From contig JBLDXI010000020.1 of assembly GCA_047495785.1 (NCBI GenBank), forward strand, positions 496,001 through 560,000: 64,000 bases of DNA. Reading direction: 5' to 3'. Made by a program: the position numbers and the translations under genes. The notes below the pieces were generated by a model. It saw only the letters and a program-made list of their open reading frames with translations. It searched no databases and was not told where the DNA came from. Numbering within the stretch: position 1 is the first letter of the stretch; each line of letters opens with the position of its first letter. The stretch comes from Lepidodermella squamata. Lineage: Eukaryota > Animalia > Gastrotricha. Shown here one piece after another: positions 17,799 to 47,301 of the stretch.

Positions 17799-19472
17799 GG
17801 CGATAGCAATAACAATGCGCGCCCGTTGTTGATGTTGTTGTTCCATCTAGGCAGCAATAATAGTCGTGGTGGCACAGGGACAGGTAGTAGCAATAGCGGC
17901 AGTTCGTTAGTTTGTTGTAGTTTGGGCCATGGGTGTGTCCCTGTGGCCGGCGTCCACTCGCGCCCTCCTCGGTCTTGTTGCTCTCAGTCGAAGGCGGCTG
18001 TGGGCTACCGGAAGAGGAAGGGAATATATTTATTATACACACGTGTACGCTAGAACAACACCGCCGCTGTAGACGGGCCTCGAGGGCGTCTGCAATAAAA
18101 TTGAGCTTGTCGTGCTCTCCGCCACCACCCGTTTGTCTCGCCGTCGTCGGCTGTCGGCAAGCGGGGGGCGGGCTAATAATTCATAAATCAGCAGTGATCC
18201 CATATTCCGACACTGTATTATCGCCCTTAATATTCTGATTCTGATTAGATGATGCTCCCAAAAGCGTAATCGCGAAAACACAACAATAACAACAAGCCCA
18301 GCCACCCATCACCCCTCCTACCTTCATTGCATTCATATTGTATCGGCGGCGGCTATTAATATTTGCTACCGGCCCAAATCATCATCTACATGCCGCGTCA
18401 ATAAAAGCGGGTCTGGCAGTTGTTGTTTTGTTCTCGCGGTTTAGTTGTCACTTAGCGATGTGCGTGATAGGTTTTCGTGTTTTTCGTCCGATTCCGCGCA
18501 TTTCTGCTTCAGTTTGCGAATTTCATTTCTTTATTGCACATTGCATTTGGCGACTCTACCGCCGCCTCCCTAGATCGCAATGTGAAATAAAGCAGCAACT
18601 GGGCAGCTTCTAAGGTTTTCTCTGTCTCGAATTAGATGCAATCGGACGCCGTCGCTGCGCCTGATCATCGCGAGTAATGCGCATCTTCACCTTTGTCGCC
18701 GACGGTTTCGTTTTAGTTTAATTAATGTCATCTGCTGAGTATCGAAATCGACGCGACTTACTCACCTTAGCGCTAATACTATTGCTACTAGTAGCAGGAC
18801 ACAGAGACAGTAAAAGGCGGCCGCCTTTAGCTCGATGACCTGCTCGCGTTCGTAGAATTACGATATTAGCCGCTGCTGCTCATCCTCTATAGCGGCCTGT
18901 AATTCGGCCTAATTGGCCTCTACACTTCGTGTCACATCCGCTATCCATTTTCGCTAATCCACACCTTTCAACGCGCGTCTGACACTCATCGTCGCGATTG
19001 CTGCCGTACAACTGTGAGTGTTTGCCGCTTGCAGTTGTTTACGGCGCCGTCGCGAATACCTAGCCCGCGATGCGCTCGCCGCTGCCGCATTATCTTTCAG
19101 TCACTTGGCCGCCATTTAGCAATTAGTCGCCGCTCGGGTGGGGTTTCACAACAAACGTGAATTGTACCTGTCTGCTCGCGCGCGGGCGCTCTGCTTTCAA
19201 TCTCGCTCTCGATCAGGCGTTGTCTCACGCATCATGTGGCGCTGCTCATCGTTCATTTGATAATTCTGCGCGCTTCGCTGTCGTCTTGAATTTCGTCTTC
19301 TGTGCCTTCGCTTCGCACATCCTGCCTGCATCAAACGTGCCAATTTACGTGATCTGTCATTTTCATTTACGCCTAACACTGCGCCGGCCACCTCGCGTGG
19401 CCACAAACAGCCGCATTTCATTTTCCATTTTGTCTCCCCTAGTTTAGACAACATTTTGTCTTTTTATCATTC

Positions 19473-21877
19473 ATGGCCTCATACCCGCCTGCGCGTCCAC
19501 GTCCTCGTAAAACTGCTGCTAAGCGTGAGCCCGTCGAACCCCACAACGGCCCGCCTCCCACTTCGAAACATCCCGATGTATCGCTGAAGATCCGTCTACT
19601 CATCCACACAATGGTTTGTTTCTGGCCTTAATTATTTGTAACATTGCTTATTTTATATATTTTCATAACAGCAAGTCGGCGCTGTGATTGGAAGAGCTGG
19701 TGAAAGGATCAAGAATCTTCGTAAAAATGTAAGTCGCATTGCGAGTTTGACCTAAAGCTGTCTAGTCCCGTTGTGTGTTTTCTTGATGCTAAACCTTGTC
19801 TGTGTTGTATTTCCTTACATAAACCCTACGCGTTCCGACCGACCCTGATCCGAACCCTGACCCGAAAAACCTACCATCGAACCTTGTTTGTATGTCCATA
19901 ACCAATCGTCCTTATATTCCGGGTTTGTAGTTCAGCGCCGTCATTGAAGTTGTGTCCGACTCTGAAAACCAAATCCCTGAACGGTTTGTTACTTGAACCT
20001 TAACCAACTAACCCTTGCAACGAATACCGATCACAAAACCAAGAAAGCATTGCCCTTTTTATATTATTTTTTCATTTTGTTTTCCTTTTCACCATGAAAA
20101 CAGTACGCTCACCATGTCGGCTACGATAAAAAATCTGCTGGCGATCATGCAAGAGCTGATTCCGGTGCTGAATGAAAGCCCGCCGCCGCCTCTACGTCAT
20201 CAGAAAAACGGAACAAGCGAAAATAACATTCGCCTTCTGGTTCACTACGTCGTCGCTGGATCGGTGATTGGCACAGGCGGGACGAATATTCGCAAGCTAC
20301 GGCAAGAAACCGGCGCTCACATCACGGTGTTCCCCGAATGCTGCCCGTCCTCGAGCGATCGCGTCATTCTCGCCTCAGGGTCGCTCGAATCTGTCATGGC
20401 GACGATGACTGCCGTACTCGATACGATCGCCGAGACTGACATTCGCGGGCAGGCCTTCCCGTACAATCCGTTTCAATCGTATCAACCCGGTATGATCCAG
20501 TCATATGGTGGCTTCCCGATGTTGAACGCCTACGGTCATGAAATGCCGCCTCAGTTCGCTGGGCCATACCCAGGTGGTAGCCAATACGATCACCCGCCAC
20601 TGCCGCCTCCTCTCTTCGGCGGGCCTCCGTCAATGCCAATGCCCCCGCCGTTGACAATGGACCCGGGCTATGGTTACTATCAGCCGCCGATGTACAATCC
20701 CTATCAACAACATGCCATGCAAGGGCAGCCTATGGATCGCAATCACAAGGGGACGAAAAGACGCCGCGTTGATGCTTCTCCTGAACCGATTCCTGGCCCT
20801 CCACCGCAAATGATCGCGCCTAGCTACATTCCACCGCCGTTGGTCAACGATGACCGCCCCTCAAGCAGCGGCTACACTGGCGGGTACTACTCGAACGGAT
20901 CCGGTGAGAAATCAGGCAAGATGCCTCGATACTTCGATGCAGAAGACAACAACATCTCCAATCATGGCGGGCTGCCTCCGAGTTTGATTTCAGAACCACC
21001 GATGCACCGGCAATACGCTTCGCAGTACGAACCGCCGCCTCAGAACGTGCCAATGCCGGTGCCACCGCCGCAGCCGGCACAGCAGGAGCAGCAAAGGGCC
21101 TCGGAACCGCCGCCACTGTTGTTCCCCCAGCAACCGGCGGCACAGGCAAGCGAGAAGTACACGATTCCGCCTGAAGCGGCCGGTGCCGTGATCGGACCGC
21201 GAGGCAAACGCGCCCATTTCGTTCGGCAGACGACCGGTGCTCGCGTGACGATTTCCGACGACGTGACCAAGTCAGGCAATCGTATCATTACTCTGACGGG
21301 AACGAAGGCACAAGTCGACGCAGCCAAGCATCACATGCGGACGTAGTAAGTTCATTTTTTGTTTCAAACCAAGTCGCATTATATTCATTCGCAAATGACT
21401 ACATTCGTTTCTAAAAGTTCAGCTACACGTACATTTGTATTTTTGTTGTCTTGTGTTCGTTTCGTCGTTTTGTTCGTTTTGTTTCGCGGGTGGGGTGGGT
21501 TCGTTGAAGAGGTCGTTCCGGCATGGAAGACTGGTGATTTTGTTGTTGGAAGCTGATAGCTACGGGCGAAGGCGGTTGTGAGCAACAATGAGTCACTCGT
21601 TTTCCTAATCGGGCTTCCGTGAAACTAACAGCAGCTTCACGTGTTGTGCCATTTATGTTGTTGTCGTTTCGTTGACGTTTCGTTCTTACATTCACACATC
21701 ACACATTTGAATTGCTACACTCTACGCCTATTTTATGTTCTAATTTCCGCTTTTCAAAACGAATCGCTTTGTTTCTTTTTCAGCCTTGCCGAGTTCTATC
21801 GCGCTCAGCAGCAACAGCCTGGCCAGACTACCTCTGACTTTTTCAACAACAGGGACGGCATCAATTTTTGTGATTGA
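19473..21877 (+). CDS. HNRNPK: hnRNP K-like triple-KH-domain RNA-binding protein
   Basis: Exons 19473-19613, 19672-19728, 19931-19983, 20104-21345, 21784-21877. KH1 GAVIGRAG; KH2 GSVIGTGG with ITVFPECCPSSSDRV (hnRNP K-type ECCPxSxDRV); KH3 GAVIGPRG..RIITLTGT after a long linker. Confidence 0.88.
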
Positions 21878-24137: not shown

Positions 24138-26615
24138 TCAACGTTTGTACGGGTGGTACGAGTTGCGATCTTGCCGACCGTAGTCCTCGCCCGACTTTTG
24201 CCCGTAGCCACCGGCCATCGCGCCGTCACCACCTGCGTTGTTCATGCCAAAACCGCCGTAGTTCGCCGCCTGCACGTTGCCGTCCGACCCAGTCGTCGGC
24301 GGCCCGACAGGCATCGGCATCGCGCCAGGCATGCCCGTCATATTCATCCCCGCCATGTTCATGCCAGCCATCGGCATCGTCATGCCCGCAGTCGCGCCTG
24401 GCATGCCGGGCATTCCGTACATGCCGGGAGTGGGGTAGCCCTGTGAGGAAGCAGACTTCAATAATATTTCAGTGAAACCAAAACCCAGTCCTGCGACTGG
24501 ACTCTCATCTACCTGGTACGCCGGGTTCCAGCCCATTGCGGCCCATTGTTGAGCAGCCCACGGAGCCGCCGCCATCGGACCATAATTCTTAAATCAAAAT
24601 AACATTACTGCATAGTTCGACTAATTAAGGGAGACATTTCATACCGGGTATTGGCCAATCGCAGCAGCCGCACCTGGACCAGCCAGGCCAGCGGCAGCAG
24701 CTGTCGCCGACATACCCCATGGAGTCATGTTGTTGCCGCCATCTCCATTGCCCATACCGCCGCCCATGCCGCGACCTCGACCGGAGGGTCCTCTAGTTTG
24801 AGGGGAAGCACCAACGTTTCCTGAGGGTTCGCGAGGCTCTGCGCATTTAATTTCGACCTGGCATTGATTAAAAAAACGAAGTTTATCCAAAGTTTATAAA
24901 TTTGGCATAAAAAACTGCACAAGTGCACCAAAATGCATCAAGAGAAAAGTAGCCAAGGTATAACCCCAACTAAGCCAAATATAAATAACCCAACTATGTA
25001 TATTTTTATCAATCGTAGATACGAAGTCTATAGACAAAATATGTAAATATATAACCAATCATAAATTTTACCGTAATTTAGTTAAATTAAGCCTAGTATT
25101 AAGGATTTAGAATAATTTAACCCAGTTACATTGGATAACAATAGGAGGAGGCACATGCTTTGAAATGGTGCATTCACACATGAAAAGCGCAATCGGGCGA
25201 ACAAAAATGGCGCGTGAACATGGCCTCCACAATCAAGTTCTCTTCTTTCAAGGCATACTCCAAAATACACACTTTTAAAAGAGAGCTAGCGGCAGAGGTC
25301 TATTATCACAGGTCCAGGTTTTTGTGCCACCCGGTGACCGCTCGTATTATATCACTGAAAGCAGTCATCATGTTGTAATATAATGATAATCATCAACACA
25401 GAGAGTGAGAATCATGTCGGTGTTTACCTGCTTGCCCTTGAAGTCAACAAAACGCATCTGAGTAAGGTGATTAACAGCCTCCGGCGTTTCAAATGAGACG
25501 AAGCCGAAACCTAGATCGAAGCCGCAGCCGAAGAGACAAATAAAACACAGATAAATGCAGTTGTTGATCAGTTGCCGTCGCGGGGTCGAGAATTCGCTTC
25601 TTCAACTCTGGGCTTATTAACCCATCAAGGTATTAATGTAACTTAGAGTTACAGTAATAGTACGTTTTAGTGTGGTAAGTTTTCGATTAAGTGGCAGACA
25701 AGTCATCAGTCATCACATTTTGAGCCTAGATAGCTAGGTAATATAATATAATAAATAAACAATTTAATTTAAATATTTATCGGAATTCAAACGGCTAACT
25801 TTTACCCATTCGACTCGAATCGTTAATATATTTTATAAAAATTGCCTATGACACACTTCATTCCCGGTAGTAATAATAATTATCATATTAATAGAAATAG
25901 TCAATTTTCGGAGGAAAAAATAATGAAAACTAAGGAACTCACATCTGCTTTGGCGATTTTCGGGATTCACAACGACGACTGCTTCTGTGACCTGTCAAAT
26001 ACGAGAAAATTAGGACGAGAAATTACGATATATTGAGACTTACTCGACCAAACATGGAGAAAAATTCCCGAACGTCAGTATCTTTAGCATCTTTAGGCAA
26101 GCCACCGACGAAGACCTGCAATGGAGAGGATTTCTGAGTAAACAAGGTCCCAATATCTGTTTTGTTAGTGATATGAGGTTAGCGACCGAAACCTTTTTAG
26201 ACAGCCGGCCGTCGCGATCGCCACCCATGCCGCCCATTCCGCCGCCGCCGCCTTGCATGCGATTCATGTTCATTCCTGGATTCTGAGCCCGGTTGGCTGC
26301 TGCTTGTTTCGGATTGCACCGTTTCGGATCGATCTGTTTACCGTCGAGGATGTGAGGGGCAGCAGCGAGGACGCCTTCTACTGATGAGGGTTCACGGAAT
26401 GTGACGAAACCGAAGCCCCTCGACTGGTCTGTGTTGGGGTCCCGCATGACAATGCACTCTGAAACTTCACCGTATCGACTGAAATAATTGAACATCGACT
26501 CTGAAATTATGAAAAATGTTACGTAATACTGAAGAAAAATCTGAATTTTAAACTCACGTTGCGTGGACAGCTTGCTGAGGCCACCAACAAACATTTTTCC
26601 TTCCTCGCCGCTCAT
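24138..26615 (-). CDS. DAZAP1: DAZAP1/Hrb27C-type two-RRM hnRNP protein
   Basis: Exons 26615-26558, 26500-26193, 26115-26044, 25991-25943, 25510-25428, 24857-24645, 24587-24513, 24440-24138. EEGKMFVGGL, SRGFGFVTF, PHILDGKQIDPKRCNP, KKVFVGGLP, GKQVEIKCAEPR, and a C-terminal PY-NLS-like YHPYKR. Confidence 0.88.
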
Positions 26616-27711
26616 TATGTCGATCACGATAATACAAATATAAGATATACAATGATCTACCTAAATTGAAAATTGAACACATTTACTCACATGGATAGTC
26701 ATTTATTTATATAACAAAATCTGAAAAGAAACACAACACCAACACAGTTACGCACATTGCCGAGTGCCACGTGTGTTGAAAAAAGTGTCTGAACTTGGGA
26801 AAGTTCAAGAGGTGTGTGAATAAGAAGGCTCTGAAATATCCATAAACAGCGTGGTTAGTATGTACATAAATAGTCGCAATGCTACAACAGGAAGAGATTT
26901 CTGTGTTATTGTTTCAAGAGAATAGCAAATAATAAAGATAAAAAAGATATCTCTCGCACTTGATAGCCAATAATGTAAAATTCACAATTTGTAACAAATC
27001 CAAAGAAAACGCGTCTACTATACCTTGGTTATTATAAATCGAAATGTGTTCCACGGAGTTATTATGCACCACGTTTTTCCAGAAGTCAATGTAGCCTAGC
27101 AGCTTTACATCCTCATAACAAAACGACGACGGACAATATCATCGGTCCACAGCGACGAAAAGCCTCTGATAAATTCAGAAGTTCAAGGAAAGAGAAGAGA
27201 AGCGAAATTAAAGAAAAAACACAGTCAAAGTTGGTCGTTATCAGCAGCACTTGCACAACAATTCGATTCTGTTGAACAGAATTAAAAAAGTTTATATCAA
27301 ACCCACAACCTTCGAAACTCGGAGAAGAAAAACAACGCAAGATTGAGCGCAGACTCTGGCTGGCTGAGATTGCAGCAAATATGCATGAAGATGAGCAATT
27401 GTCTCTTTTGTTAGCATGGCTATTGATTAGTAGAGATTAGTACAAAATGAGCGGCTTGTGTATATATTGCATAAAGAAAAATAAAACGTGAACGGCTCCT
27501 TCGCCTTCCCACATGTAGTCCATCAACGCAAACTTTTAGAACAAACGAAATAAATATATTATACGAGATAATGTGAGATTTTTGATTCTCTGCTGTCGGA
27601 ATAACAACGATTTTCCATCCTTTTGGCAACTCAATTCGCTCAATTGGTTACATTAATTAATCACAACAAAGTTAAAAAACAGTATTATAAGTTATTTCCG
27701 TCAATTTTCAA

Positions 27712-30123
27712 TCAAGCATCTGGAATTCTTTGCAGCCGGCGCTGCAGTTTCTCGATCAATTCAGCACTGCAAGTATCGAGGGTTAAATTAGCAGGTCGGG
27801 GCGGCAAACGCGGCGCCTGAGGCTGGATTTGCTGAGGACGAGCGTATTGCGGCTGGACTTGATTTCGGTTTCGATTCATCGTTTGCGCGATCACGTCGTC
27901 CGAATTAACATACAACTCATCGGTATCTTCTTCGCCGCCGAATAAATTTCCGTTAGGAGGCGGCGGTGGCGGGGGCGGAATGACTCGTGACTGGAGCGTT
28001 GAAGACAACAGTGGAATGTTATTAGCCCCGCCGTTATTTGAAAACGACGAAGACGGGCAACGGGTAGTATCATCTGACTCGAATGACTCTTTCCGCCGGC
28101 TGAGACGAGCTGATAACTCGTTTTGAAAGAACTGCCCCGAACCAGTGGCGTTATCGTCGTCATACGACTGAAGTTGCTGCTGTTGGCGAGATGAATTGTT
28201 ATTATTAGCATTCATCGTTCTGTTATTAGCCGGAACGACATTCGATTGCTGGTAGGCACTGTTCACACTGTACTGTTGCTGGCTATAGCCTTGCCGGGTG
28301 GCGGTCGATTGTGAGAAGTGAATGTGGGTGTTACTGGCTGTGTTTTCAATCATAACTCCGTCATTCAACTCATCACGCCCGTTTTCATCGTCTCCGGTCA
28401 CCGAGTAGTGACAGTCGTCGAGCCCATCGCCGTCGGCGTCGCAATCACAGCAGCCCCGCTGCGCATTGCCACCGTTTGAGTTCACGCTGATGCACGACTT
28501 GTTGTCCAAGAACTGGAACGCATCGTTAACAATGTCCATCGCCGAGTCTTTTCGCGACAAATTCATCATCCCACCACCGCCAACGCCACCTGTGTTATTA
28601 CTGCTGCCGTTGAAACGGCCGTGCTGGGCCGCCGTGGCCGCAACCGCGCTCTTTCCCGGCTTTGCGGTCGCACTCAGCAGCAAGTCCATGTCGTTTGTCC
28701 TCAGGGGCTGAGTTCCGGAGACGCTGACGAAGTAGGCCATGATGTCAGATAAACAACTCAGCGGTTCGTGCTGTGAAAACAGAACACACAGCGCGATATT
28801 ATAACACTGAATATTAATATACACACACACATAAGACGAAACTTCACAAAAGCAAAATATTTACACCGACACTAGCAGTGGTGTTACTTTCTTGAAACGC
28901 GCAACAGTGGTTAAAGCGCACAAACCTCGTAGTCGAACTGAATTTTGTAGCCACGAGCGACTCGCATGACCTGAAAATGGCTGAAACGCGTCGAAGAACC
29001 AGGAAAATTTCGCATTGATATAGTGTAGCTGCCCGAGTCGCGGAAAGTAGTCGATTCGCGCATTAAGACCGAGCCAAATGACTGCCCATATTCGAGAATT
29101 TGCTCAGCTCGATCGCGGTTACACGTCTCGAAAAACCATGGAGGAGAGCCTTCCATATTGAGTTCAGGGTCCTCGTGAAAACGATGTTTCTAAAATATTC
29201 CACCTTAAGATAAATTCATCAGATTTCAAATCAACAAACATTCTCTCTGATCTGAGGGATTGACGGGCGGCCACCAGACCCGCCTGATGAACTGGCCGAA
29301 CTCGCGGCTGAGACTGAATGAACTCCGTTAGTAACCATCACGGTGCCAGGGTTACCGTTCGAATGACCGTGCATAATATGGTGATGGTGATTCGGCGAGT
29401 CGATAAAATCACCGCCATTTGGCATAGGTGGAGGCACTGATCCCGGGGAAGGTCTGTTCGAGGCACAGTTTTGAAGGCGTTCGATTGCCGATGCGATGGC
29501 GTGAAGTTGAGATGGAGTCAACGGAACGTCCTCTGGAATACGCCCCGTCGCTAAACCGATAATATACCCTCGCCAAATATCTCTCTCCGGCCTGGTCTCA
29601 CATCTGGTGACGGTACAAATTATTCAAAAATCGCCAGGGTTCGTAGGTCAACTCTCTTACCGAAACCTGTTATGCATCATTTTGCCGTCTCTGTCGATTG
29701 TGTGCACATCAAATTTGAAACGACCAGGCTTGTCGTCGCCGCGGTTCTTGCAAACAGTGTGATAGTTCAGTAGTAGATACCCAATCAACTGTGCGAAGAA
29801 CAAAGGAATGGTTAAAATAAACAAGATAATTGTTTACAAATGCAACAAGGATGAGGTCATAGGGATGAAAGCACTAAATTACACACCTGGTCGGGTTTTT
29901 GGGTCTGCCGCGACTTGAATGCGAACATGAAATGGCCTCGAATGACGACCCATACTTTGTTCCACGACTAAAACATCAGCAAATTGAGTTAGGACGAGAA
30001 ATTTCAATATTTCCTGTTTAATTTTACCTTTCCTTTCGCGGTTTTGTGTTGCAGCCAGTCCTCATAAAATTTTTCAAGCCGCTGTCGCTCCGGAGAAGAC
30101 GCAGATGACAGAAATCCGTTCAT
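27712..30123 (-). CDS. STAP-family PH-SH2 signalling adaptor with long Gln/Pro-rich tail
   Basis: Exons 30123-30028, 29967-29887, 29788-29661, 29603-29240, 29189-28926, 28770-27712. PH domain (FYEDWL..WNKVWVVIRG..IWRGYIIGLA..IPEDVPLTPSQ, STAP-like) followed by SH2 (PPWFF..RDRAEQIL..GSVLMRES..GSYTIS). Confidence 0.78.
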
Positions 30124-33521: not shown

Positions 33522-35318
33522 TTACAGATCTGAAAGCTCAGAATGTATTTTGTTGGCCGCCAATGGCTTAATAGCTCTGGCGTCCTTCTTTTTGTAAAGA
33601 GCGTCTTGCTCCACCTGCGACGCCGAAGCTGCCCTTTTCGATGCTTCTTTAAAAATGACGTCTTTGACAACAACATTTGAATTGTCTCCAGATAACGCGA
33701 ATTGCAAGGAGAAGGCGGCTGTTTCGTCTGAATCAGATCCATCCGGTTTTTTAAGCAGATACTGCCACGTTCTCACTAGTGATAAAAACTCTTGCAATGA
33801 CATCTTGGCAGGTAGCGAGTAGTGACGTATTACCTTGGTCTGAAGACGATGATTCTCGCAAATTGGCTGTTCCTCGTAGTAACAAGTCGCTATCAACTTT
33901 GAATTTGATTGTAACATAGCTTGTGGCTTCATCACCGCCTTCACTTTCATCGCTTTCCTTAGATTTATCTTTTGCCATGCAGGATATCGCGATGATGCGA
34001 TAAATGTCAAGAGCAACTATTATTCCATTTTTAGTAGCAAAGAATAGGTTTCCAAACTGCGAATCGGAGGAGAGAATAAGCTTTTATATGGGAAGCATCA
34101 AATTTCATACGGTAACTATTCGTAGACCGAAAAACAAATACAATCGCAATACGAAGAACAAAGCATCCATGCTGTTAATTTTACATCGAATGAAAAAACA
34201 ATGCGATATATTCTTCACCAATTACCTTATCATAGTGGCAACGATTACCCAGAGCTCAGATTCAAAACAGCAGCAGCAAACGTACTTTATTTTATGCTTT
34301 GCCTGAGCAACTATGTCCGGGTTTGCAGCTGGGTCATTCCATTGAACCTTTTCCTCCCTGGTAGCCGTGTAATTGAAAGTGAATTGAAAGTGGCTGCGAA
34401 GAAAAGATTCATATAAACAGCATATTGTATCTCTAACACATATTCTACCTGATAGTGTAAGCCGTCAGCACCACGTAAACTATATATGTGCTATATTACA
34501 GAAAATAATTGCTGAAAATGAGAAGACACGAAATATGCTGGAAAATAAGTCCACCTTTGCTTCACCAATTCATCTCGCAAATTATCCATGAGATCAAGTA
34601 TATCTGCGAATATTTTAGTTGATTGGAGGGGTATTGATTATCGCTGCTCAACTTACCTGATGCAATTCCAATGAAGCCGAGTAAAATTTGCGATAACTGG
34701 TCATGGCTTATACTTCCCCTTGGAGAGAGCCATTTAACGACTATTATTACAAGAAATGAGATTTGCTCGAGAATGCGAGCCCAACTCGGTGGGGTGAAGT
34801 ACAGGGGCAACCATAAAGAACCGAGCTTCGATAATGACTCCACCTCCCAGTCGCTGAATGAAGAATTGCTGAGTCGCTTCTGAATGTCGAGCTCTACAAC
34901 CCATACATTTGGAATATTGCAAACGCAGAAAATCGCGATCGAAGGCCACCACCATTTGTACTCGTGACCTTTGTTAACCACCAGAGCCACTATTAGCTCC
35001 GGAATGAACAAAATGATACCCCAACAAGGAAGCCAGGTCATACTGTGAGAGGGCGTAGTGTTAATGAACATTTAGAAACGCGCAATTTTCATTACAAAAA
35101 TGAGGAGCGAGTGGATCCGTCGGGGTTCGTAGCGCCAGGCAATTCGGCAGCGTTGCCGCTGGTTACCGTGGCTGCGCGCCAAGAGGTTAAGATTACACAT
35201 GCTCCCAACAATAATCGTGCGATAATGCCTTTGATTACAGCGCAACAGGAAACCTGCGGTGAATTGAAAACAAACAGTCAGTGGAAGATTCAGTATACCT
35301 ATAAACCTTTTTCGGCAT
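33522..35318 (-). CDS. TMEM26: Transmembrane protein 26 family member
   Basis: Exons 35318-35307, 35253-35096, 35042-34657, 34603-34555, 34490-34449, 34393-34226, 34171-34111, 34056-33834, 33775-33522. Motifs GHEYKWWWPSI, PNVWVVELD, KWLSPRGSISHDQLSQILLGFIGIASDILD, DALFFVLRL, FFATKN..DIYR. Confidence 0.88.
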
Positions 35319-35645: not shown

Positions 35646-38600
35646 TCACGCTTTGCCAGATGGACTCGCAGTCACAAAAGCTCGGATCGACACGGGAATC
35701 TTCATTGAGACATCCGCTTTAGTTGCTATGATCATTGTGCAACTAACAGACGTGGAAATCTGCAAAGCAAAAATAACAGTTATAATGAAGTAACAATAAA
35801 TAGACAAGTCAGAAGTTTAAGAAGAAATAATCAGAATCAATGCATTTTCCCGAAGAAATAGCTCGCGGAATCGCAAGTTCGTCAAAGGGTGTCAGCAGAT
35901 GATGTGCTTCTTCAGAGGATTGTGCTTCCGAAGAGGATAGTTGGAATCTTTAGTTTGCAATATATTCAATTTATAGGATAGAGAAAGCGGAAACGATATC
36001 ATATAATGGATGCGGGTAGTTGAAAAAATGTCTTGAAAGAGGTCAGCGTTGGATATATTATAGAACAATTTCCAATTAGGGTTTATTATAAATAACGGGA
36101 AATTATCAGGGCTGAACTGAATTCTAGAAAAGTGGAAACAATCGCCATAGGAATGTACCTGGGCAAACAGACGGCGCTGAAAATCGAAAAAAATTAGGAG
36201 TTTCCCAGTTATGCCACATACTCAAAACCGCAGTTTTTCCCCTCAAATCATAAGTACCTAAGCAGGAAAAATACGCAAACATACCTTCTGATCAGCAGAT
36301 GGACGCCACGATACTTGAATGGTAGCTTCAGCGCCCATTTCTACCAAGCCCTGGCAAATTTGTAACCCATAACATCAGAAGAATCCAAGAAAAAGTGGAT
36401 AAATACATACCTTAGCTGGCTCAACGCTGATTCCAAGCTGTTTCAGCTGATTGAGGTTATCGATCAAGAACTCGGCATTCTACAATTTAAAAATAAAGGG
36501 GTGGATGTTAAGAGAAACAGCAAGTAATTTCACAATTTATATTTAACTGCATGCAACCGACTTGATAAAATAATAAAGAGTGATTACAATTCGCAGTGAT
36601 CCCGATTTACGACATTTTCACACTGCTTTTTTGTTATACAAGTTCAGACTCCGCTAGCTCCAGGTAACGCTCGTGAGGCTTATTTGTCCGCTTTCTCCCC
36701 GATTGACGTCTCAATTCTGCGATTTCCTCGGCCTTGAATTCCATCAATTTTTATAAAATTTACTCACTTATGGTAGTTAAGCCCTAATTGGTTTAATTAG
36801 CAAAATAATAATACCTTTCTAGCTGCAAGGAGAATAGAACGAGCGCAACCAATACGAATTGTCCGCTCGACAACTTGTTCGGAGGCGGAAAGCGGAAGCA
36901 GCAACAAGAGTGGCGGATGTTGATTGCCAGCTGCAGCGGCCGCCCCACCACCACCGGCATTTTCCTTCTTCTCGTCACCACTGCCGTCAGCCAGCTCTTG
37001 CTCCTGCTGCAAGGCAGCCGCGGCTAGCGAAGCGAGCGACATTGTTTCAGGCTCAAGTTGTTCGCCGCCGTACGCGTAAACAAGGCGCCTGCTCGATCGG
37101 CCAATCACTTTGAACGAGTAATTAGTAGCCGGCTTTTGGAACAGGAAAAAACACGCTTTTTCGGCAAAAGTGCCCGATCGATCTGGTGCGAAGTTGACGG
37201 TCAGTTGGCGCTTTTCTCCGGCGTGCAAAATTCCATTCTGAGGAACAATGTCGAAAACTGTTCTGCCGGATAGGTTAGCAACAGGATTGCCGCTGGGCGT
37301 AGCATGTGGATCCATCTCAATTCGGTATTCGACCGCAACAGAAGATTTGTTCTCCATCTTAAAATAACACCGCAATATTTGGGATGTATTGAATCGTAAA
37401 AATTGATATTTACCGTGAATGAACGGTCGGTATATTCACCAGCCAGCACACATCCAAGATCAAAGACTCGATCAACACCGAGTCCGGTGAATTCCAGGGC
37501 TGGTTTCACCCCTCTGCCACGCATGGTCATCGTCAAACAAGACAGCCCGCAATCTATTCGAATGTTCTCTTGATACTGCAGAGTGAAACAGTCAAAAATA
37601 AGTTGAATTCTAGTAGTTCTTAAATAAAATTACAAGTCGCTCTTCTTTCGGCTCGAATGCGAATATCGCCGTGATGATATTGCCTGGTTCCATTGCGGCC
37701 AACGCGTTTCGAAGCTCGAAAGGACCTGTTGGATCGAGAGCCGACGTTCTTACATCAAGTGTTTCATTCGAAACATTTTGAACAGAAACATGAGACCTCT
37801 CGATTTGCCCAACTGCGATCTATAATGCAAACATTTCACGTTTGGTCTATATATTTCGAATAAAACGTACCTCGCCGAAATCTTTGACATAGGAACCGAA
37901 GTCAGAAAGTAGTAGCATATGAGGTCGCACGGAGGGGCAATGCACAAGTAGATAGAGGGTGTTCTCGGTACTGAATAAAGAAAAATTAATTGATTGACGC
38001 AAGGTTTAGAGAGTTAAATACTTGAATTCCAGTTGATGTGTTGCAGATGCCTCGCCATAAGCTACGTAGCAGGGAATGACGTAGCTTTTCAAGTCCGGCT
38101 GAAATTAATCAGAAATAAAAACGGGAAGAGTTAGCGAATTATTCACTCACCTGATAAGACAGCAAAAGGTTTGTTTTGGCTTGGAAATAGACAGGCGAAG
38201 ATGGATCTACTTGTTCGGGCGTGACCTGCTTGACAGCAACCGCTTTCTTATCTCTTCCATGCCCAGCTTTTTGAGCAGCGGCGCCCGGTTTTTTTGGCCC
38301 CTAATATAGCCGAGGTAACGATTTAAGGAATGCCGAAAATAGACATATAGAATTACCTCCTCCACCTCGTTGCCCTGTTGGGACTGCTGATTTGCATGTA
38401 GTTGAGCAGTTGCAATTACAGCAGCTCGTTCTCTTATTTCAGCATCGGCAATAGTCGGCGCGAATCGCACTCGAATCGTCTCTTTATGGCCGGGTTTCAC
38501 AGTTCCGACACACGGAGAAACACTGATGGGGACATTTGGCGGCACGACAAAGTGAAATGACGTAGGGCCAACAGGTGAGACTTCGCCGGTACCAATGCGA

Positions 38601-41600
38601 GGCACGGCATGTGAAAATTCATTAGCTGAGACGTGTTCATTGATGACGAACAGCTTCGCTACGCTGTAGTCGTCAATGGCTGTTGGTCTAAAGTGAACCA
38701 CCTGTTCCGAAAGTTTGAGGGGAGGGTGAGCAGCTATTCCCTTGCACGGAATTTTGAACTCGCGCCCAGCCATTGTTTTACAGCAGAGTTCAAACTTGTA
38801 CTCGCCAGCTTTCGTTGGCAAAAAGACTACCTCAAGATTTAGCTCTTCTAGCGGCAATATGGTGCCGAAACCGTCAGCGGGCTGAACTTCGGCGTACTAA
38901 ATAAGAAGACACGATCTCAACTATTTGGTCTCTTCTTTACAAAAAAAATAACTCACCTCTGGCATGTTGAGGAAGGCGAATTCTTGTGGTAGTAGTGATT
39001 TACTTCGCATAGTCAACGGAACTCGAACTGCTTCATAAATTGTGCAACAGCCGAAGTCGATCGATTGCAAATCAAATTCGATGTCAGAATTTGTGACGAC
39101 TGCGCATATGTAGCACTCGATGGTTCTGGTCTAAAAACAAGGAAATCGAATTAGCATCGACGTATATTCTAAAATTCTGCAACTAAGATAACTAAGCCGC
39201 AATAAACACGTTCGAATTTCAGCACAAAAACAGCGAATCTGCGTGAAACTTGCTACACTTCTGTCTCTGATTTCCTTTAGGCCGATAACACAAATTCATA
39301 AAATCACAGCACGCCTACAGTCTCAAGCTTGGAAACATAACGCAAAGCAATTTTCTAACACTTCCAGTATTCAACTATAAAAATGTTACCTCTCGATCAT
39401 ACTTGGGATTAAGCGAAAAAGGGTTAGGGGTGAGCGGGATTAAAAGCTACTATAGTATGAAATTCATACCTGGTCTGCAACAACCACCGTCAGAGGGACC
39501 TCCAAAACGCCAGTAGATGGATCGTAATATTTTGTGCCAGTACACTCGAGGTCTTTCGGCAGAGTCAATTTCGGGAAGAACTTGACCTGAGCTGAAAATG
39601 CGCTTTCAGCCTGAATGTAGCCAGTATGAGGAAGAACGTCAAGATGATCTCGCAAGGCTGGAGGGATCGTGAAAGTCAACCGTAAAGCTGTTTTTGCTCT
39701 TCAAAAATACAAATCTTAGCTTAGGGAAAGGTTGAAAAGCAAGTATCACACCTGTTTCGCAAAATTATACTGTCTTGAAAAAGTCGATTGTAAGTACAGA
39801 TTCGCAAATCTACAGTTGTCCGCTCGAAATAAACGGGAACATCGCTGGCACTTCCGCGGACTATTATAGTAATCTGTTAAAAATATGCATTCCTTTAAAA
39901 TCGATACTCTCCTAATAGCGAAATTTACCGGTGGATTTTCAGGATGAGCGAAGGTAGCTACAAAATTAGCTGTGCATCTGCTCATGGGAATTTTCGGCTC
40001 CCATAGGATTTCACACTTGACCGAGCCGAATGGCGGGACGGTTCCCATAAACACATGCCCGTCTTCAGTTCTCAGGACATCGCTTGGAATAAGCTTGAAT
40101 TCTTCCTCCTCCTCAGCATTTCCACTGGATCCTTCGACATTTTCTTTTGCCACGGCCCCGCTGTTGTAGCCCTCGATTTTGAAATCTGTCGGCAGAGCGC
40201 CAGCGTTTGAAAATGTCACCGCTCTTTTGCTCGCACCATAGATGACCATTGTGCCGAAATCTACCGCCATCATCTCTCCAGCAGCAGCTTTTACCTCGTG
40301 AGACACGTATTCGTTTGTAGTTTCGGAGCAGGAAATCTAAAATGTTGGACTTCGGTAATATGGCCTTACCGTATAATTCTAGAACTTACAATGCATTTCT
40401 TAGTGCGAGCCTGGAATGGGACAGCGAATGCCCCGGTTGAAGCTAGGAAGCTTATTTCACCATCCAAATCGCAATTCAACTGTGGCGTGAAAGTCACGGT
40501 AAATTCGCAAGTCATGCCAGCCGAAATATGACCCGGAGGATTGAAACTGAATAGAAAGAAATAATGGTACAGCTCAATTGAATTTTTTCGACTTGAGGCT
40601 TCTCAATGCACTGAATTTCACTTAATTGAAGTACCGAGCTATTAACATGCCAAACTTACTCGATTTGGACAAAGTTTTTCAGCACCTCCGATAGATCGAC
40701 AAATTTGAGGGTATTGAGCGTGTAGGTAACGTTTGTCAACACAACCCGACGTTTGTAAGTCACGCCGATGTCAATGTCCTTGAAAAGGATAACTTTGGGC
40801 GTGCTATAAAATGGCGATTCTCCTTTGAACTCGCGGCCAGCTGCAATCTGACGCTGAACTGCGCCAGCGCGAAGCCTATCCATGCTTTTCTTTAGCATTT
40901 CCTAAAAGATAACCGGCAAAAAAGATAACCACTCGTAAATTGTCATCTTCGGAACCCACCTCTTCGAGCTTGCTCCGCTTGTTCAGCCCATTTTTCCCAT
41001 TTTTGTCAGCCTTTTTACCCGTCGCTTCAAGGCTATCTCGTTGAGCGGATCCTTCAGCTAACCACAAACCCTGAAATTCGGGAACAGCCAGTTCTTCCTC
41101 GTCATCGTCAATATAGACTTTTTGAGTCTCGGGTTTACGAATGTACAACTTCTGATCGGTTTCGGCGGACGGTGGCCGCCGAGGCAACTCGTCCTCTTCA
41201 TCACCAATCAAGTTAAAAATATCGTCTCCTTTGCGATGGGGCTGCAAAATTAGAGACATAATTAATGCGGCTTGGTACAACAAAAATCATACCTTGTTAG
41301 GACTCAAGCTCCGCGGCCGATTGACTTCCCTGGAGATAAGGCGAGTTCGCTGAGTTTCAAAAACGGGCCTCGCCGTTTGTAGGTCCAAGCTGGCTATCAT
41401 CTGGTTGACCACATTCAGAGGCTTCAATTTGACCTATTGCGATCATGTTTAGAAAAACATCTAAAAATTCATGTGAAAAAGCATACTTCATTTGGTACGA
41501 CTTGCTCTCTGAGCGGCCGAAAAAGATACGGCTGCCGTTCTTTGCGGCGCTCCATGCTGGTTTCCTCCTGAATCAATTTCGACGCAATCTCGACTTCTCG

Positions 41601-42876
41601 GATTCGGCTTTTCATGGCAATTTCACTGTAATAAATTATTCCGAACAGTAAATAAGGATCGGTTTAGCAACTACAACACCTACGCTTTGGCATCTTCAAG
41701 GGCTTTCAGTCGCTTCCGAACCAATAGCTGCTGGTCAGGGTGAAGACCTTGGCGCCTGAACTCTTCACGAAGAATTTTAATCTCAGCCTCGGTCGCAGCT
41801 TCGTTCGCTTTACGCCGCGCTTGGGATGCAGCTAATCCTTCCCTAAACAAAACATTCAAGGCTTCTAGAATGTAAATGAGAAACAAGAAATATTTACCTG
41901 TTTTTACGGATGTCCTCCTTCAGTTCCATAATTGCTGTTGTGCGGCGTTGAACCTCTTGCCGTCGAACCTGAGATTCCCGTTCTCGTTCGCGAGCTATTT
42001 TAGCTTCGAGCGACTCTCGGGCAGCAGCGGCACGTTGAAAAGCAACGTGAGCCGAATCTTGCCGGCGTTTGCTCTCTTCTGCCGCACGCTGAGCGCTGCG
42101 TTCCAATTTCCTATCATTATTCGAAAGATGCATCGATCATATCTCGCGCATGAAACTGGCTTACTTTTTCTTTGCTAGCTTTGAAGCTTCAGACAGAAAT
42201 ACCAGTTCATTTTCTCGTCTGATACGTTCTTCGGCCTCTTTTTCCTGAACAGTCTTCAAGTTGCCCTCAAGCTGCCGCAATTCGGCATCAACGAGCTGCA
42301 TTCGACCCTGTTGTACCTCTGCAATGGCCAAATCATACTCAGCTTGCCGTAGTTGCGTTCTAATTTGAGCTTCCAGTTCCGACTCAGTTGCCAGCTCTTT
42401 TAAAACGCGCTTCATTTCAGATTGCAGCCTGCCGGTTGCTGCAACGTTCGCTTTGTTTTCATCGAGTTGTTTCTCAATGCGATGCTTCTCCCTCTCCAGA
42501 AAACGTTGGCGATCGCGACAACAGTCAAGTTCATCTCTTCGACGTTGTACGTTATCTTGATTTCCAACATAGTCTTTATTTATTTGACCCAAGAAGGAGC
42601 GCAACTGAAACATCTCGGATTGTTCTCGGACTGTGAAGCTTCTCTGCTTGCCAGCACTTGGACTATGAATTATTTAAAATGATTCCCATTAAGGCAACAT
42701 TTCGTTGATATAACCTACCTTCGCTTTTCAGCGACTGAAGCTGCTTTCTCTTCAATCGTCATAGGTTTGTCGATCAGGTCAGCGTAATCCCCGTCACTGA
42801 GGTCATCTATGTCGTTTGGTCCATAATCTTCAAGGGCGGCAGAAGGCAACTCTGCATCGTATTCTTCCTCTTCCAT
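35646..42876 (-). CDS. CFAP74: Cilia- and flagella-associated protein 74
   Basis: About 20 exons joined in frame from ATG 42876 to TGA 35646. N-terminal coiled coil, then Ig-like/ASH-type repeats: PEFQGLW, QIAAGREFKG, FNPPGHISAGMTCEFTVTFTP, PHTGYIQAESAFSAQVKFFP, VQPADGFGTILPLE, HAVPRIG..PVGPTSF. Confidence 0.9.
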
Positions 42877-42886
42877 TTTTAAGACA

Positions 42887-42945
42887 CTAAGATAAATTAA
42901 AGTGTTTTAAAGCTAAGCACTGCGCTCAATAAAAAAGCGTTTATT
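42887..42945 (-). promoter_or_regulatory. FSIP1 polyA signal followed by an unpaired 3' splice acceptor upstream of CFAP74
   Basis: AATAAA at 42945-42940, T-rich spacer, then ttaatttatctTAG at 42889-42887, 10 nt before the CFAP74 ATG. No consensus donor lies in between. Confidence 0.6.
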
Positions 42946-42965
42946 CAGATTGTTTGCAAATTCAA

Positions 42966-45292
42966 TCATTTATTTGACGACGACCGAGAAGAGAAAGAGG
43001 TACCATCCAAACGTAGATCGGATAAATCTCTATCGATCGTCGAAGAACTACTTTTCCTCGACTCGGCTGAATTTCTTGAAGCCGCTTCAGATTTTGTTGT
43101 AGACCGACGACGAGCGTTGAGAGGTGGTAAAGTCGGCGAAGAGCAATTTTGATAATTTTTGGGCTCCTTGTACAAGTCGTTAAGATTAGGCCTATCTGAG
43201 AGACTTGGGGTCGGAGTTACACTTTCGACTTCTGCAGATTCTCTTATTTCATTAAGTTTGCCAGAAAAATTGCGAGGTTGAAGTGACGACGCCGTAATAT
43301 TGGCAGGTTCTTTTTCAGTCGTTTCCGAGGCTGAGATTACTGGCTCATTCGGAACTGCATCAGGTAGAGATCGAAGGAAAGCAGGAGGATACTCCAAATG
43401 CGCTTCAACTTCACGCAGGAAAGACCAAGTCTCATTGTCATAAAACTGATTCATTGAGCTTCCGTTAGTTAAATCGTCATAATTATACTGAGGTGGCTGA
43501 ATCGAAATTAATCCCAACTCTTGTTTTGCTTGATCTAACAACTTCTGCAGTGTTGCTTCTGGCAATCGCGAGGCCGATGCAATCACTTCGTCGTATGTCA
43601 TTACAGAGGAACCGTCGTCGATATCATTTTCTGATAGAACCGAAACACACTGACTGACAAGAGCTTGAACTTCGCTAGGAGCTAGTTTTGGAATCTCAGC
43701 CTCGACTGGATACAGATTGTTGCCTTTCATATCAGCCAATTGCTCGTCGATGCTCTCGAGTCGAGTGTTTAGTTCCCGAGTTTCACGCACCTCCATCAAC
43801 GCTTTTTCGCCGAGATAAGATTGACCACTAGCTTCGGCTGTACGTGGCGATATAGGATCCTCCATAATTATAGCCAGTGCATATTCATCGGATCTGTCTT
43901 CTTGTAATACTGATAGCCTGGAAGAATTGTGAGCAGCGCCCGATATGGGCAGTGAATGCGAGCTGCTTGTCGCCCTGAACGAATCAATGGAGCCAGTTGA
44001 ACTGTCTTTTCGAGAGCGAGAAGTATAACGGCTGACGTCTAGCTGTCGAGATCCCAAAGAGCGAAGACGACTATCGATGGCGCTTAACCGCTCAACCGCT
44101 GTGTCGTCAGGTTTATACCCTTCGCTGAGCATCGAGGATATGTTTGATGACCTCGAACTTGAAACTTCATGATTTTTTGGTACTAGCGCAGTTTCAGACT
44201 GAAGAGAATTCTCTGCTGTGTGTTCTCCTTCTTCCTCTAGATCGGCTAACAATTCCGAAAGTCGCTGTTTCTCGCTACTTGTCATCGGGACATTACTTGC
44301 TGCGTCTTGGGCCAGCTGTAATAAAAGAAAACATTAATAAGACATTCACAACTGAGCATGAACCGAGTAAATCTAACCTGGATATTTCTTGCTATGAAAT
44401 TTTTGTTCGATTTCTTCTTAGATGACACATTAGCACCTCCGTTCGATATGCTTTTCGACACAAAAGCTTCTTTAGTCTTACCGATAGATCGTTTCGCTGT
44501 CATTCCTCCTGACTTGCTCGCGCTATGAACATCTGGTGAATTGGTTTCACTGACGCTACTACGCGCAGTAGCGTAGTCAGATGATGAAGAGCAAGATGCC
44601 GGGTTCCTATTACGGTCATCTGTGTGGGTAATGGAAGCTCCAACTTTTGATTTTGTGAAATGAATATCATTAAGCTCAGTGGTGAACACTGGTACAACAT
44701 CACTCTGTGCATCAGATGAATCATCGCTGGCTTCGCTACCATCAGATAATGTTTCGCTTCCAGAGATTTCGCCTGCTTCAAGCTCCAATGTGACTTTGCG
44801 ATTCTTTTTCTTTTTCGGTGGTAAATCAATGGACAAAAACTTCGAAGTGTTTGCTTGCACAGTCGAGCAGTTGTTAGCACTCTTGGGATAATCAATAGCC
44901 AGCTGTTCAATTTCCTTGGCCATATTAGCTTCAAATATCAGCCGAGATCGTTTCGCCTCAATTTCAACCTTCGAAAGTCGCTTTAGATGGCGATCTAGTT
45001 TCTTTATGGTCAAATAACCATCTCGTACTTGCAACTCAGCATCCTGCGTTGATTCGCTAGCAACGTCGCTCAAAATCTGTCGATTGCTTAGTTCGAGCTT
45101 AGAAAGAATTTCTTCCAACCCTTGGGAATTGTGCAACATGTCGGCAATGCTCTCATCATCGTCATCATTGTCGTCTTTTACGACATTCACCTGGTCGTCA
45201 GTTTCATCCGCGTTTTCCTCCGACCCAACGAGATCATCACGATCCTCGCTATAATTGGATAAAGTTTCAACATCGGCGCTAGTCTGAATCAT
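42966..45292 (-). CDS. FSIP1: Fibrous sheath-interacting protein 1
   Basis: Exons 45292-44378 and 44315-42966. IKKLDRHL, NTSKFLS, PVFTTE, the junction NFIARNIQ|LAQDA..MTSSEKQRLSELLADLEE, EGY..LSAIDSRL and GEKALME..LESIDEQL match the FSIP1 motif order. Confidence 0.85.
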
Positions 45293-45949
45293 CTAAAAAC
45301 AATGGCAATTATTTTAGACTAGTTGTATGATACCCCTAAATGTATGACGACACAGCTGCAAGGAACTTTATGTCTCAAACGAGAGAGAATCAGGGAGAGA
45401 CAAAGCTGTATAAATAGTAACAGCTGCAAGCTACTGGATCCAAAGCGTAGGTATATAGCGTATAGTATTTAGCTACGCACATGAAATGCCTATATTGTAA
45501 CTGGTCTCAAAAGAAGGTACAAAAAGGCGGTTGATCTACTGAGGCAGCCAAGATACAACCATTGATCACATTGACAATCCAGAGTTTATTAGAAGGGTGT
45601 GAGTAACCAAGTTAACAAAACAACCGTTGCCGATTGACACGGCACTCTTCGATATACTCCAATTCCATAGGTAAAGCCACCCCATATAGCTGTTCGAGGG
45701 CCGCAGGCGCAGGGCGTCCCACAAGCGCACAGGCATGTACACGATACCATGGCAACTTTTTATTTTTATTATCAATTTGGTAATAATATACAAAATTATA
45801 AATATATCAATTTGTTTAAACATAGCTTGAGCAAATAAATTGTCGCAGGTTTTTGCACGGAAAAATCCAATCGCCCGATCGTGGCGCAGCATAAGGTCAT
45901 AACTCATTTCCCCTACCGCAAAAGGGCTCGTTAAATTGATTTTTAGCGA

Positions 45950-47301
45950 AATCAGCTAGAAAGATCCTTTCATGTTATTCCTATCGATATACAGAAGATA
46001 CGCGGGCCCCAGACCTTTCTTGATGGCTGACAAAGTTACGTCAACTTTTGTCAACTTGTCATTTTTCGATGAGCGCCCGTCAACTGCTTTTCGGCTGTAA
46101 TGGTGCATCTGGAGCACATCTGGCATTGTGAATATTGATGCTTACGAGCCATATTCAAGCCCGAACCAGCTCTGCAATAGTTGCTCGTCGCTGAACGCGA
46201 CATTACGTTCATTCAATGCTCTGCTGACACTGCGTGATGTTTACACCCTAACCATTCAATCTGTGTAAGTGTTGAATTCCTGTGCTTCTGTTCAACTGAG
46301 AGCCATATAGACATCGCAAACGACCGAAGTTGTTGGGAAATTCTCATAAGATATTTCGGGTTTGTTTAAGTAATAGTCCGATTTAATACCCTCTCAACCT
46401 TTATTGCAACGAGTATACATAGTTTCAAGCCACGTCAAGTGAACTTAATGTCGGCGGTTTCCTGGTTGATTAAGTCAGATTTTAGTTTTGCAGAGAAAGG
46501 AAGCCTGCCCTTTTAAGCAGTTACAATAAAAAACAAATCAGTTGCTCTGAAGTGATCGAATTGGTATTATAGACTAGAATTAATGTTGTTCAAATTTCGG
46601 TTTGCTTGCATTCCCGAAATGATTTCAGCTTGACCATTGACCATTGATCTCTCCAGCCGAGTCCAGGAAATCTCCTGCTAAGGTAGATAGGAGAAGCAAT
46701 TGCTTGAGGCAGCTGCTCTTGTTGAACGAATTGCTGAGGCTGAACAAACTGGGCTGGCTGAGCATACTTCCGATGCTGAGGGATTCCGGCGTGTAGGTCG
46801 TACTGCGGAGGCTCAGCGGAGGCTGCAGAGGTTGCGCGTAAAAGCAAGTAAGCTTGCCGTCAATATATGCCGAAGCTGGTAGTTGCTGCTGAACAGGCTG
46901 GTTGAAGGTTGAAGGTCATCTGCGCGCGGTTAAGCGACAGGCAGCTGAACAGCTTGATGTTTAATGAATGCTGCGCTCTTGAAAAGAATTTCGTCGGTAA
47001 ATCAGCCACGCCATCTCCTATCTTTCCAGTGAGGCCCGATGACAGCGTCTTCAGCTTCAGCTTGATGTTATCCGTAACTCCGAGTTCAGGCATGCGCGCT
47101 ACCACCGGCGACAGCCTCACCGGACCTGGTCCGCTGGGCAGAAGCGCGAACGGACAGAGCGATTAGCAGCGGCGGCTCGAGCAAACGGTCGTGGCGAAAG
47201 CGGATTTTATGGAGGGCGTTGGTGATACTCGGAGCAACACAGTCAAGCTTCATCGTAGCCGAACTAGCATTGAAAGCGGTGTCTCCAATAGGGCTGGTCA
47301 T
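45950..47301 (-). pseudogene. Decayed coding-like sequence of unknown origin (pseudogene or mobile-element remnant)
   Basis: Chain of overlapping or adjacent short minus-strand frames (47301-47086, 47120-46860, 46847-46590, about 46225-45956) broken by stops and frameshifts, with a Gln-rich repeat and a PPQY motif. No clear splice path. Confidence 0.3.

Follow-up and report, generated by a model that had tools for sequence, protein, structure and literature searches.

A putative FSIP1-CFAP74 operon of spliced-leader type in the gastrotrich Lepidodermella squamata

A 64,000-nucleotide (nt) stretch of the Lepidodermella squamata genome (assembly GCA_047495785.1, contig JBLDXI010000020.1, positions 496,001 to 560,000 of the forward strand), hereafter the window, holds an FSIP1-family gene and the gene CFAP74. 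The two lie head to tail on the minus strand, and the gap from the stop codon of FSIP1 to the ATG of CFAP74 is 89 nt (42877-42965 in window coordinates, which are used throughout). FSIP1 is known from the sperm fibrous sheath, and CFAP74, or FAP74, is a C1d protein of the central apparatus. A preliminary description, made from the sequence alone, had taken this junction for the inside of an operon in which a spliced leader (SL) is trans-spliced onto the second message. Here, the genes and the junction are described, and this interpretation is weighed against its alternatives. The published L. squamata assembly comprises 122 Mb in 157 contigs, and trans-splicing and operons are unmentioned in that paper (PMC11660948).

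Two motile-cilia genes and the junction between them

Only two public sequencing runs cover the stretch, both as contigs: X1, which is RNA-like, and X2, which is DNA. X1 behaves as RNA: its contigs carry GT..AG joints at six introns, and its depth falls to zero in the 1.1 kb that precede FSIP1. One X2 contig, 3173 nt long and 16 differences away from the window, covers 42702-45874 without a break, and because it crosses the junction the adjacency of FSIP1 and CFAP74 is not peculiar to the assembly consensus. An assembly artefact was accordingly rejected as the source of the adjacency, given that this DNA contig with its allelic differences looks independent, with the proviso that X2 may come from the same sample as the assembly. 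Family and structure searches were carried out exon by exon rather than on a joined protein. The FSIP1-family gene comprises two exons, with 754 codons in all:

44378-45292, minus strand: FSIP1-family exon 1, 305 codons; open reading frame (ORF) from the ATG at 45292, RNA-like contigs over 44378-45248, 3' end set by the joint 44315/44378
44316-44377, minus strand: FSIP1 intron of 62 nt, GTTAGA...TTACAG, from a spliced contig of run X1
42966-44315, minus strand: FSIP1-family exon 2 with the stop codon TGA at 42968-42966, 449 codons; match to Pfam PF15554, RNA-like contigs over 43170-44315

The identity of the first gene was borne out by Pfam, since exon 2 matches PF15554 with an E of 5.6e-9 and 36 bits, where the curated cut-off is 27. 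Of the 396 profile positions the match takes in 272-395, which is no more than the C-terminal third. A six-frame search of the genome with the same profile gave 51 bits and returned the sole FSIP1 match in the genome, and exon 1 has no Pfam match at E 0.01. Within exon 2 the family domain ends at about residue 187 and is followed by a Ser-rich tail, for which (the last ~250 residues, or 750 nt, of the exon) no family match was found in Pfam; the reading frame closes with ...SSSNK before the TGA. Of the 16 differences that separate X2 from the window, seven fall within 240 nt of this tail (43051-43291), a cluster that points to a fast-evolving end of the FSIP1 protein.

CFAP74 follows with a short first exon and many short introns:

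42719-42876, minus strand: CFAP74 exon 1, 158 nt, with the ATG at 42876; spliced contig 42662/42719, of which 59 nt lie in exon 1
42663-42718, minus strand: CFAP74 intron 1, 56 nt, GT..AG, from a spliced contig of run X1
36637-42662, minus strand: the rest of CFAP74, many exons with short introns and an approximate 3' limit; Pfam, the solved chain 9ijj_C, and spliced RNA-like contigs at four further introns

Three CFAP74 immunoglobulin (Ig)-like domains occur in order in this gene (Ig_CFAP74_1st, E 2.9e-16; Ig-CFAP74_2, E 1.1e-14; Ig-CFAP74_4th, E 3.6e-13), and its exons line up in order along residues 72-220, 485-561 and 1408-1502 of 9ijj_C, a solved CFAP74 chain, and also match Chlamydomonas FAP74 (7n6g), so that the name given in the preliminary description holds. 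With the ATG placed at 42876, residue 71, in exon 2, aligns to residue 72 of 9ijj_C. This colinearity to within one residue marks ATG 42876 as the real start and means that no upstream coding exon is missing; the N-terminus of CFAP74 is thus complete, and the earlier statement that there is no room for a further coding exon upstream agrees with it. CFAP74 is single-copy in the genome, save for one weak paralogue-like match elsewhere. At its other end a further 3' exon is possible, for example at 36479-36411, and the 3' end lies at 36637 or beyond. Both genes are transcribed and cis-spliced as modelled, and both in the same run, X1.

Between the two reading frames, the spacer contains the following elements:

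42877-42965, minus strand: spacer from the FSIP1 stop to the CFAP74 ATG, described by its sequence, base composition and shuffles
42940-42945, minus strand: AATAAA, candidate poly(A) signal 20 nt past the FSIP1 stop, from the sequence
42887-42895, minus strand: acceptor-like TTATCTTAG, candidate trans-splice site 10 nt before the CFAP74 ATG, from the sequence

Read along the minus strand, the FSIP1 stop codon TGA (42968-42966) is followed by 20 nt (42965-42946), AATAAA (42945-42940) and 50 nt (42939-42890). Then come a TAG (42889-42887) inside TTATCTTAG, the 10 nt TGTCTTAAAA and the CFAP74 ATG (42876-42874). The coordinates and spacings given in the preliminary description are exact, base by base. 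The spacer as a whole is 72% A+T, and the 50 nt from AATAAA to TAG contain 22 T, 12 A, 9 C and 7 G, that is, 44% T. Further copies of such motifs lie close by, with an extra AATAAA (42974-42969) touching the FSIP1 stop codon and an extra TTAG within the spacer at 42916-42913; an in-frame stop codon (42909-42907) lies upstream of the acceptor-like TTATCTTAG. The earlier description of the acceptor as unpaired also holds over the 500 nt upstream of it, as the minus strand has no strong donor (GTRAG, GTATG or GTTAG) from 43400 to 42887. Rfam, searched with the whole window at the gathering threshold, gave no match.

The 89-nt spacer was shuffled 20,000 times. An AATAAA landed within its first 50 nt in 5.4% of the shuffles and a TAG preceded by a pyrimidine within its last 20 nt in 14.9%; the two coincided in 0.8%, by criteria that were chosen post hoc with the sequence already seen.

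The start of FSIP1 and an X-box-like site upstream

The start of FSIP1 has a similar layout to that of CFAP74, and a possible ciliary promoter element lies further upstream:

45293-45301, minus strand: acceptor-like TGTTTTTAG abutting the FSIP1 ATG, where the first gene may be trans-spliced, from the sequence
45743-45756, no strand assigned: RFX X-box-like palindrome GTTGCCATGGTATC, candidate ciliary promoter element, 451 nt upstream of the FSIP1 ATG

The FSIP1 ATG is directly preceded by GTTTTTAG, and an acceptor-like TGTTTTTAG abutting the start codon is the layout expected where leaders are joined next to start codons. The upstream neighbour of FSIP1 lies more than 1.1 kb away, with zero RNA-like depth between them in run X1. 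FSIP1 is not tightly linked to this neighbour and therefore would be the first gene of the unit. The X1 contigs themselves reach only to 45248, leaving the 44 nt at 45249-45292, with the FSIP1 ATG, uncovered, and depth is zero over 45314-46435.

The X-box, with the consensus GTNRCC-N(0-3)-RGYAAC, is an RFX-bound promoter element of ciliary genes. Nothing else in the window matches GTTGCCATGGCAAC as well as the site at 45743-45756 (two mismatches), which has one mismatch to GTHNYYATRRNAAC and agrees with GTTRCCATGGYAAC at 13 of 14 positions. Its likeness to known ciliary genes consists of a near-palindromic GTTGCC-AT-GGTATC upstream of a cilia gene in a genome where perfect X-boxes are strongly over-represented: GTTRCCATGGYAAC occurs at 29 genome sites (19 of them GTTGCCATGGCAAC) versus 0 for the reversed control, and the exact TATC variant found here occurs at four sites versus 0 for the control. 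It is unlike them in that its right half-site differs from RGYAAC at one position and in standing 451 nt away from the ATG. Nowhere between the start codons (42877-45292) is there a site within one mismatch of GTHNYYATRRNAAC. The presence of an X-box-like site only upstream of FSIP1 fits one ciliary promoter for both genes, as a post-hoc argument from motifs. Beyond this locus, the 29 perfect palindromes could serve as a ready map of ciliary promoters in L. squamata.

Two further observations concern this element. The next X-box-like site, GTGTTTATGGGAAC at 40041-40054, has one mismatch to the loose consensus and lies inside a CFAP74 coding exon. Furthermore, X2 depth jumps to ~670 at 45875-46061 (neighbouring positions ~95) and several contigs break at 45873-45910, from which a multicopy repeat is placed just past the X-box-like site, ~600 nt ahead of the FSIP1 start.

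Spliced-leader-like genes and known operon systems

The operon reading presupposes an SL RNA in the species, whose absence the preliminary description had named as the finding that would speak against it. Two candidates were found, recognised by anatomy alone, in the one ribosomal DNA (rDNA) intergenic spacer that was read for such genes (L005; G000:C62:112000-116500). In this spacer a 5S rRNA gene (L005:2741-2859) is accompanied by a pair of SL-RNA-like genes that differ from each other, with 18S/28S on the other strand from all three:

L005:1132-1262: SL-RNA-like unit 1, leader part L005:1132-1162, leader end ..TTTTCAGG before GTTAGT, donor in the first stem, Sm-like AAUUUUCUGG, strong 3' hairpin (z -2.85)
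L005:2485-2585: SL-RNA-like unit 2, leader part L005:2485-2516, leader end ..TTCTAAG before GTATGA, Sm-like AAUUUGAGG, hairpin

Each rDNA repeat has one copy of unit 2, and at least 40 such copies are identical. By this anatomy of leader, GT donor, Sm-like site and hairpin, the genome carries SL-RNA-like genes, so that the objection named in the preliminary description does not apply. The two leader-like sequences begin alike (AAATATCTGCG) and diverge afterwards, which raises the question of whether the different leaders may serve separate gene classes, as SL1 and SL2 do. The mechanism would be of a known kind, and its presence in gastrotrichs appears to be unpublished: no paper was found in the literature searched that reports SL trans-splicing or operons in gastrotrichs.

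One close parallel is provided by the SL2-type operons of Caenorhabditis elegans, in which same-strand genes lie about 100 nt apart and are separated by AAUAAA, a U-rich stretch and, shortly ahead of the second gene's ATG, an acceptor for trans-splicing; their spacers measure ~100 bp (PMC7986045). Judged by eye only, the likeness to nematodes extends to a small hairpin (CGCU..AGCG) in the spacer and to a UAUCUU that fits the nematode UAYYUU. However, C. elegans uses a specialised second leader for downstream genes, whereas the two leader-like genes here are known from rDNA-spacer anatomy, and the 50 nt from AATAAA to acceptor is under the typical spacing of nematodes, which are a different phylum. 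Moreover, the genes in nematode operons are for the most part expressed broadly or in the germline, unlike cilia genes, which are specific to a cell type.

The tunicates Ciona intestinalis and Oikopleura dioica resemble the present case in that, under a single-leader system, operons are called on short same-strand distance alone. The limits applied are <100 bp and <=60 bp, respectively, and most of these operons are dicistronic (PMC7986045). Ciona operons usually have no intercistronic region, with a median of 1 bp (PMC7986045), unlike the 89-nt stop-to-ATG spacer found here with its separate poly(A) signal.

Gastrotrichs probably have the flatworms as their sister phylum (PMC6468455). Flatworms are similar in that SL trans-splicing is present among them, in Schistosoma and planarians. 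A few short-spacer operons are known from flatworms, and flatworm leaders end in AUG; the leader-like sequences described above end in ..CAGG and ..UAAG and have no evident similarity to them.

The operon reading and its alternatives

The most likely reading, which is plausible and to which we give a probability of about one half, is that FSIP1 and CFAP74 form a dicistronic operon of the spliced-leader type, headed by FSIP1. One promoter upstream of 45293, possibly using the X-box-like site at 45743-45756, would drive a precursor across both genes. The FSIP1 message would gain a leader at the acceptor abutting its ATG and would be cleaved and polyadenylated ~15-25 nt past the AATAAA at 42945-42940. 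Trans-splicing of a leader at 42887/42886, where the acceptor lies 10 nt before the CFAP74 ATG, would free and cap the CFAP74 message. From this layout we infer that the poly(A) signal and the acceptor are used, that a leader is joined at 42887, that the two genes are co-transcribed and that RFX controls them. The interpretation in the preliminary description is thus partly supported, joint transcription being likely.

The real discriminator is the 89-nt distance, a same-strand gap that stands in a genome of 121.2 Mb (151 contigs), and it is not proof. The acceptor alone does not show an operon, because a trans-spliced gene with its own promoter is also expected to have one beside its ATG. This is the first of several points that weigh against joint transcription. 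The second is that the motif chain AATAAA-N40-55-TTTAG-N0-12-ATG is not enriched genome-wide, with 1019 occurrences versus 1366 in the reversed control, so that the bare chain is weak evidence on its own. Run X1 has no contig over 42778-43169 (zero depth at 42883-43069), which leaves a leader at 42887, a poly(A) end near 42920 and any bridging transcript unreadable, and the hole itself proves nothing. Finally, contig depths differ between the two genes (~25-30 versus 4-16), although such depths cannot rank genes. The hole in X1 coincides with the dense allelic differences seen in X2 at 43051-43291, which probably broke the short contigs there; among the X1 contig ends listed, there is no loose end at 42887.

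Attempts to set the junction against a wider background gave little. ORF-based spacing counts in 264 kb showed only a weak bump at 30-59 nt (eight cases), and in a second ORF-based count gene junctions were not separable from introns. A protein word search with a 186-aa CFAP74 exon and a 439-aa FSIP1 exon gave no matches, within a length window that excluded full-length CFAP74 proteins, and a metagenome scan with a 216-aa CFAP74 exon gave no match. A second apparent AATAAA-TAG-ATG site in the window, at ~18400-18460 on the plus strand, was rejected, as no recognisable gene junction lies there.

The alternative that survives best, though we consider it doubtful, combines tight packing with independent transcription: a CFAP74 promoter inside the last exon or 3' untranslated region (UTR) of FSIP1 would give a short outron, trans-spliced at 42887, with no polycistronic precursor. 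The model for such an arrangement is the C. elegans 'hybrid' operon with internal promoters. The acceptor anatomy would be identical to that of an operon, and monocistronic trans-splicing is the rule in SL organisms (PMC7986045). The unequal contig depths of FSIP1 and CFAP74 also lean this way, as a weak measure, and the last 750 nt of the FSIP1 exon, encoding the fast-evolving Ser-rich tail with its many allelic differences at 43051-43291, could tolerate embedded regulatory sequence. However, a promoter within a coding exon is unusual, and the X-box-like site lies upstream of FSIP1 while none lies in 42877-45292. No RNA start was seen in the exon either, in data too thin to show one.

An ordinary compact pair that dispenses with trans-splicing is distinctly less probable. 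Here CFAP74 would have a minimal promoter in the spacer (e.g. around TTTAAAAC, 42911-42904) and a capped 5' UTR of a few bases, and the motifs would be there by chance. In a spacer so rich in A+T, either motif is fairly likely to arise singly by chance (5% and 15%), the chain they form lacks genome-wide enrichment, and no leader is seen at 42887, where X1 has no contig. Against this, both motifs appear jointly in only 0.8% of shuffles, and the FSIP1 poly(A) site and an entire promoter must share ~60 nt. Moreover, the genome contains SL-RNA-like genes, and FSIP1 has the same acceptor-at-ATG layout.

It is very improbable that 42887 is a cis acceptor, serving a non-coding CFAP74 first exon in or beyond FSIP1 or some joined FSIP1-CFAP74 transcripts, for although the frame is open from the acceptor to the CFAP74 ATG and the lack of RNA coverage over 42778-43169 leaves splicing there unreadable, there is no strong donor within 500 nt upstream, the CFAP74 N-terminus is already full length against the solved protein, FSIP1 closes with a stop followed by AATAAA, and the RNA-like contigs run continuously over the FSIP1 exon from 43170 up with no joint toward 42887.

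The proposed operon, if real, could be of interest for its content. The usual view of animal operons is that they join unrelated genes with broad expression, and two cilia-specific genes driven by a single ciliary promoter would be a rarer kind of animal operon, one that is functionally coherent. The fuller proposal, of a cell-type-specific operon in Gastrotricha in which two single-copy motile-cilia genes share one RFX-type ciliary promoter and are split by leader trans-splicing, is put forward only tentatively. It would give a testable hint that FSIP1 acts with CFAP74, or with the C1d projection of the central pair, in ordinary (somatic) motile cilia. For such a link between the proteins the only grounds are that their genes are adjacent and that both carry a ciliary annotation, and no paper connecting FSIP1 and CFAP74 was found in the literature searched. 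The operon would also be one more data point for SL operons in gastrotrichs, and the locus is notable mainly for pairing two single-copy motile-cilia genes.

Other genes were recognised elsewhere in the window. Downstream of CFAP74 and on the same strand lies TMEM26 (Pfam E 3.7e-26; 34562-35071, minus strand). Further away are an SH2-domain exon (28911-29156, minus strand), an RRM exon (26040-26627, minus strand) and a multi-KH-domain gene (20015-21346, plus strand).

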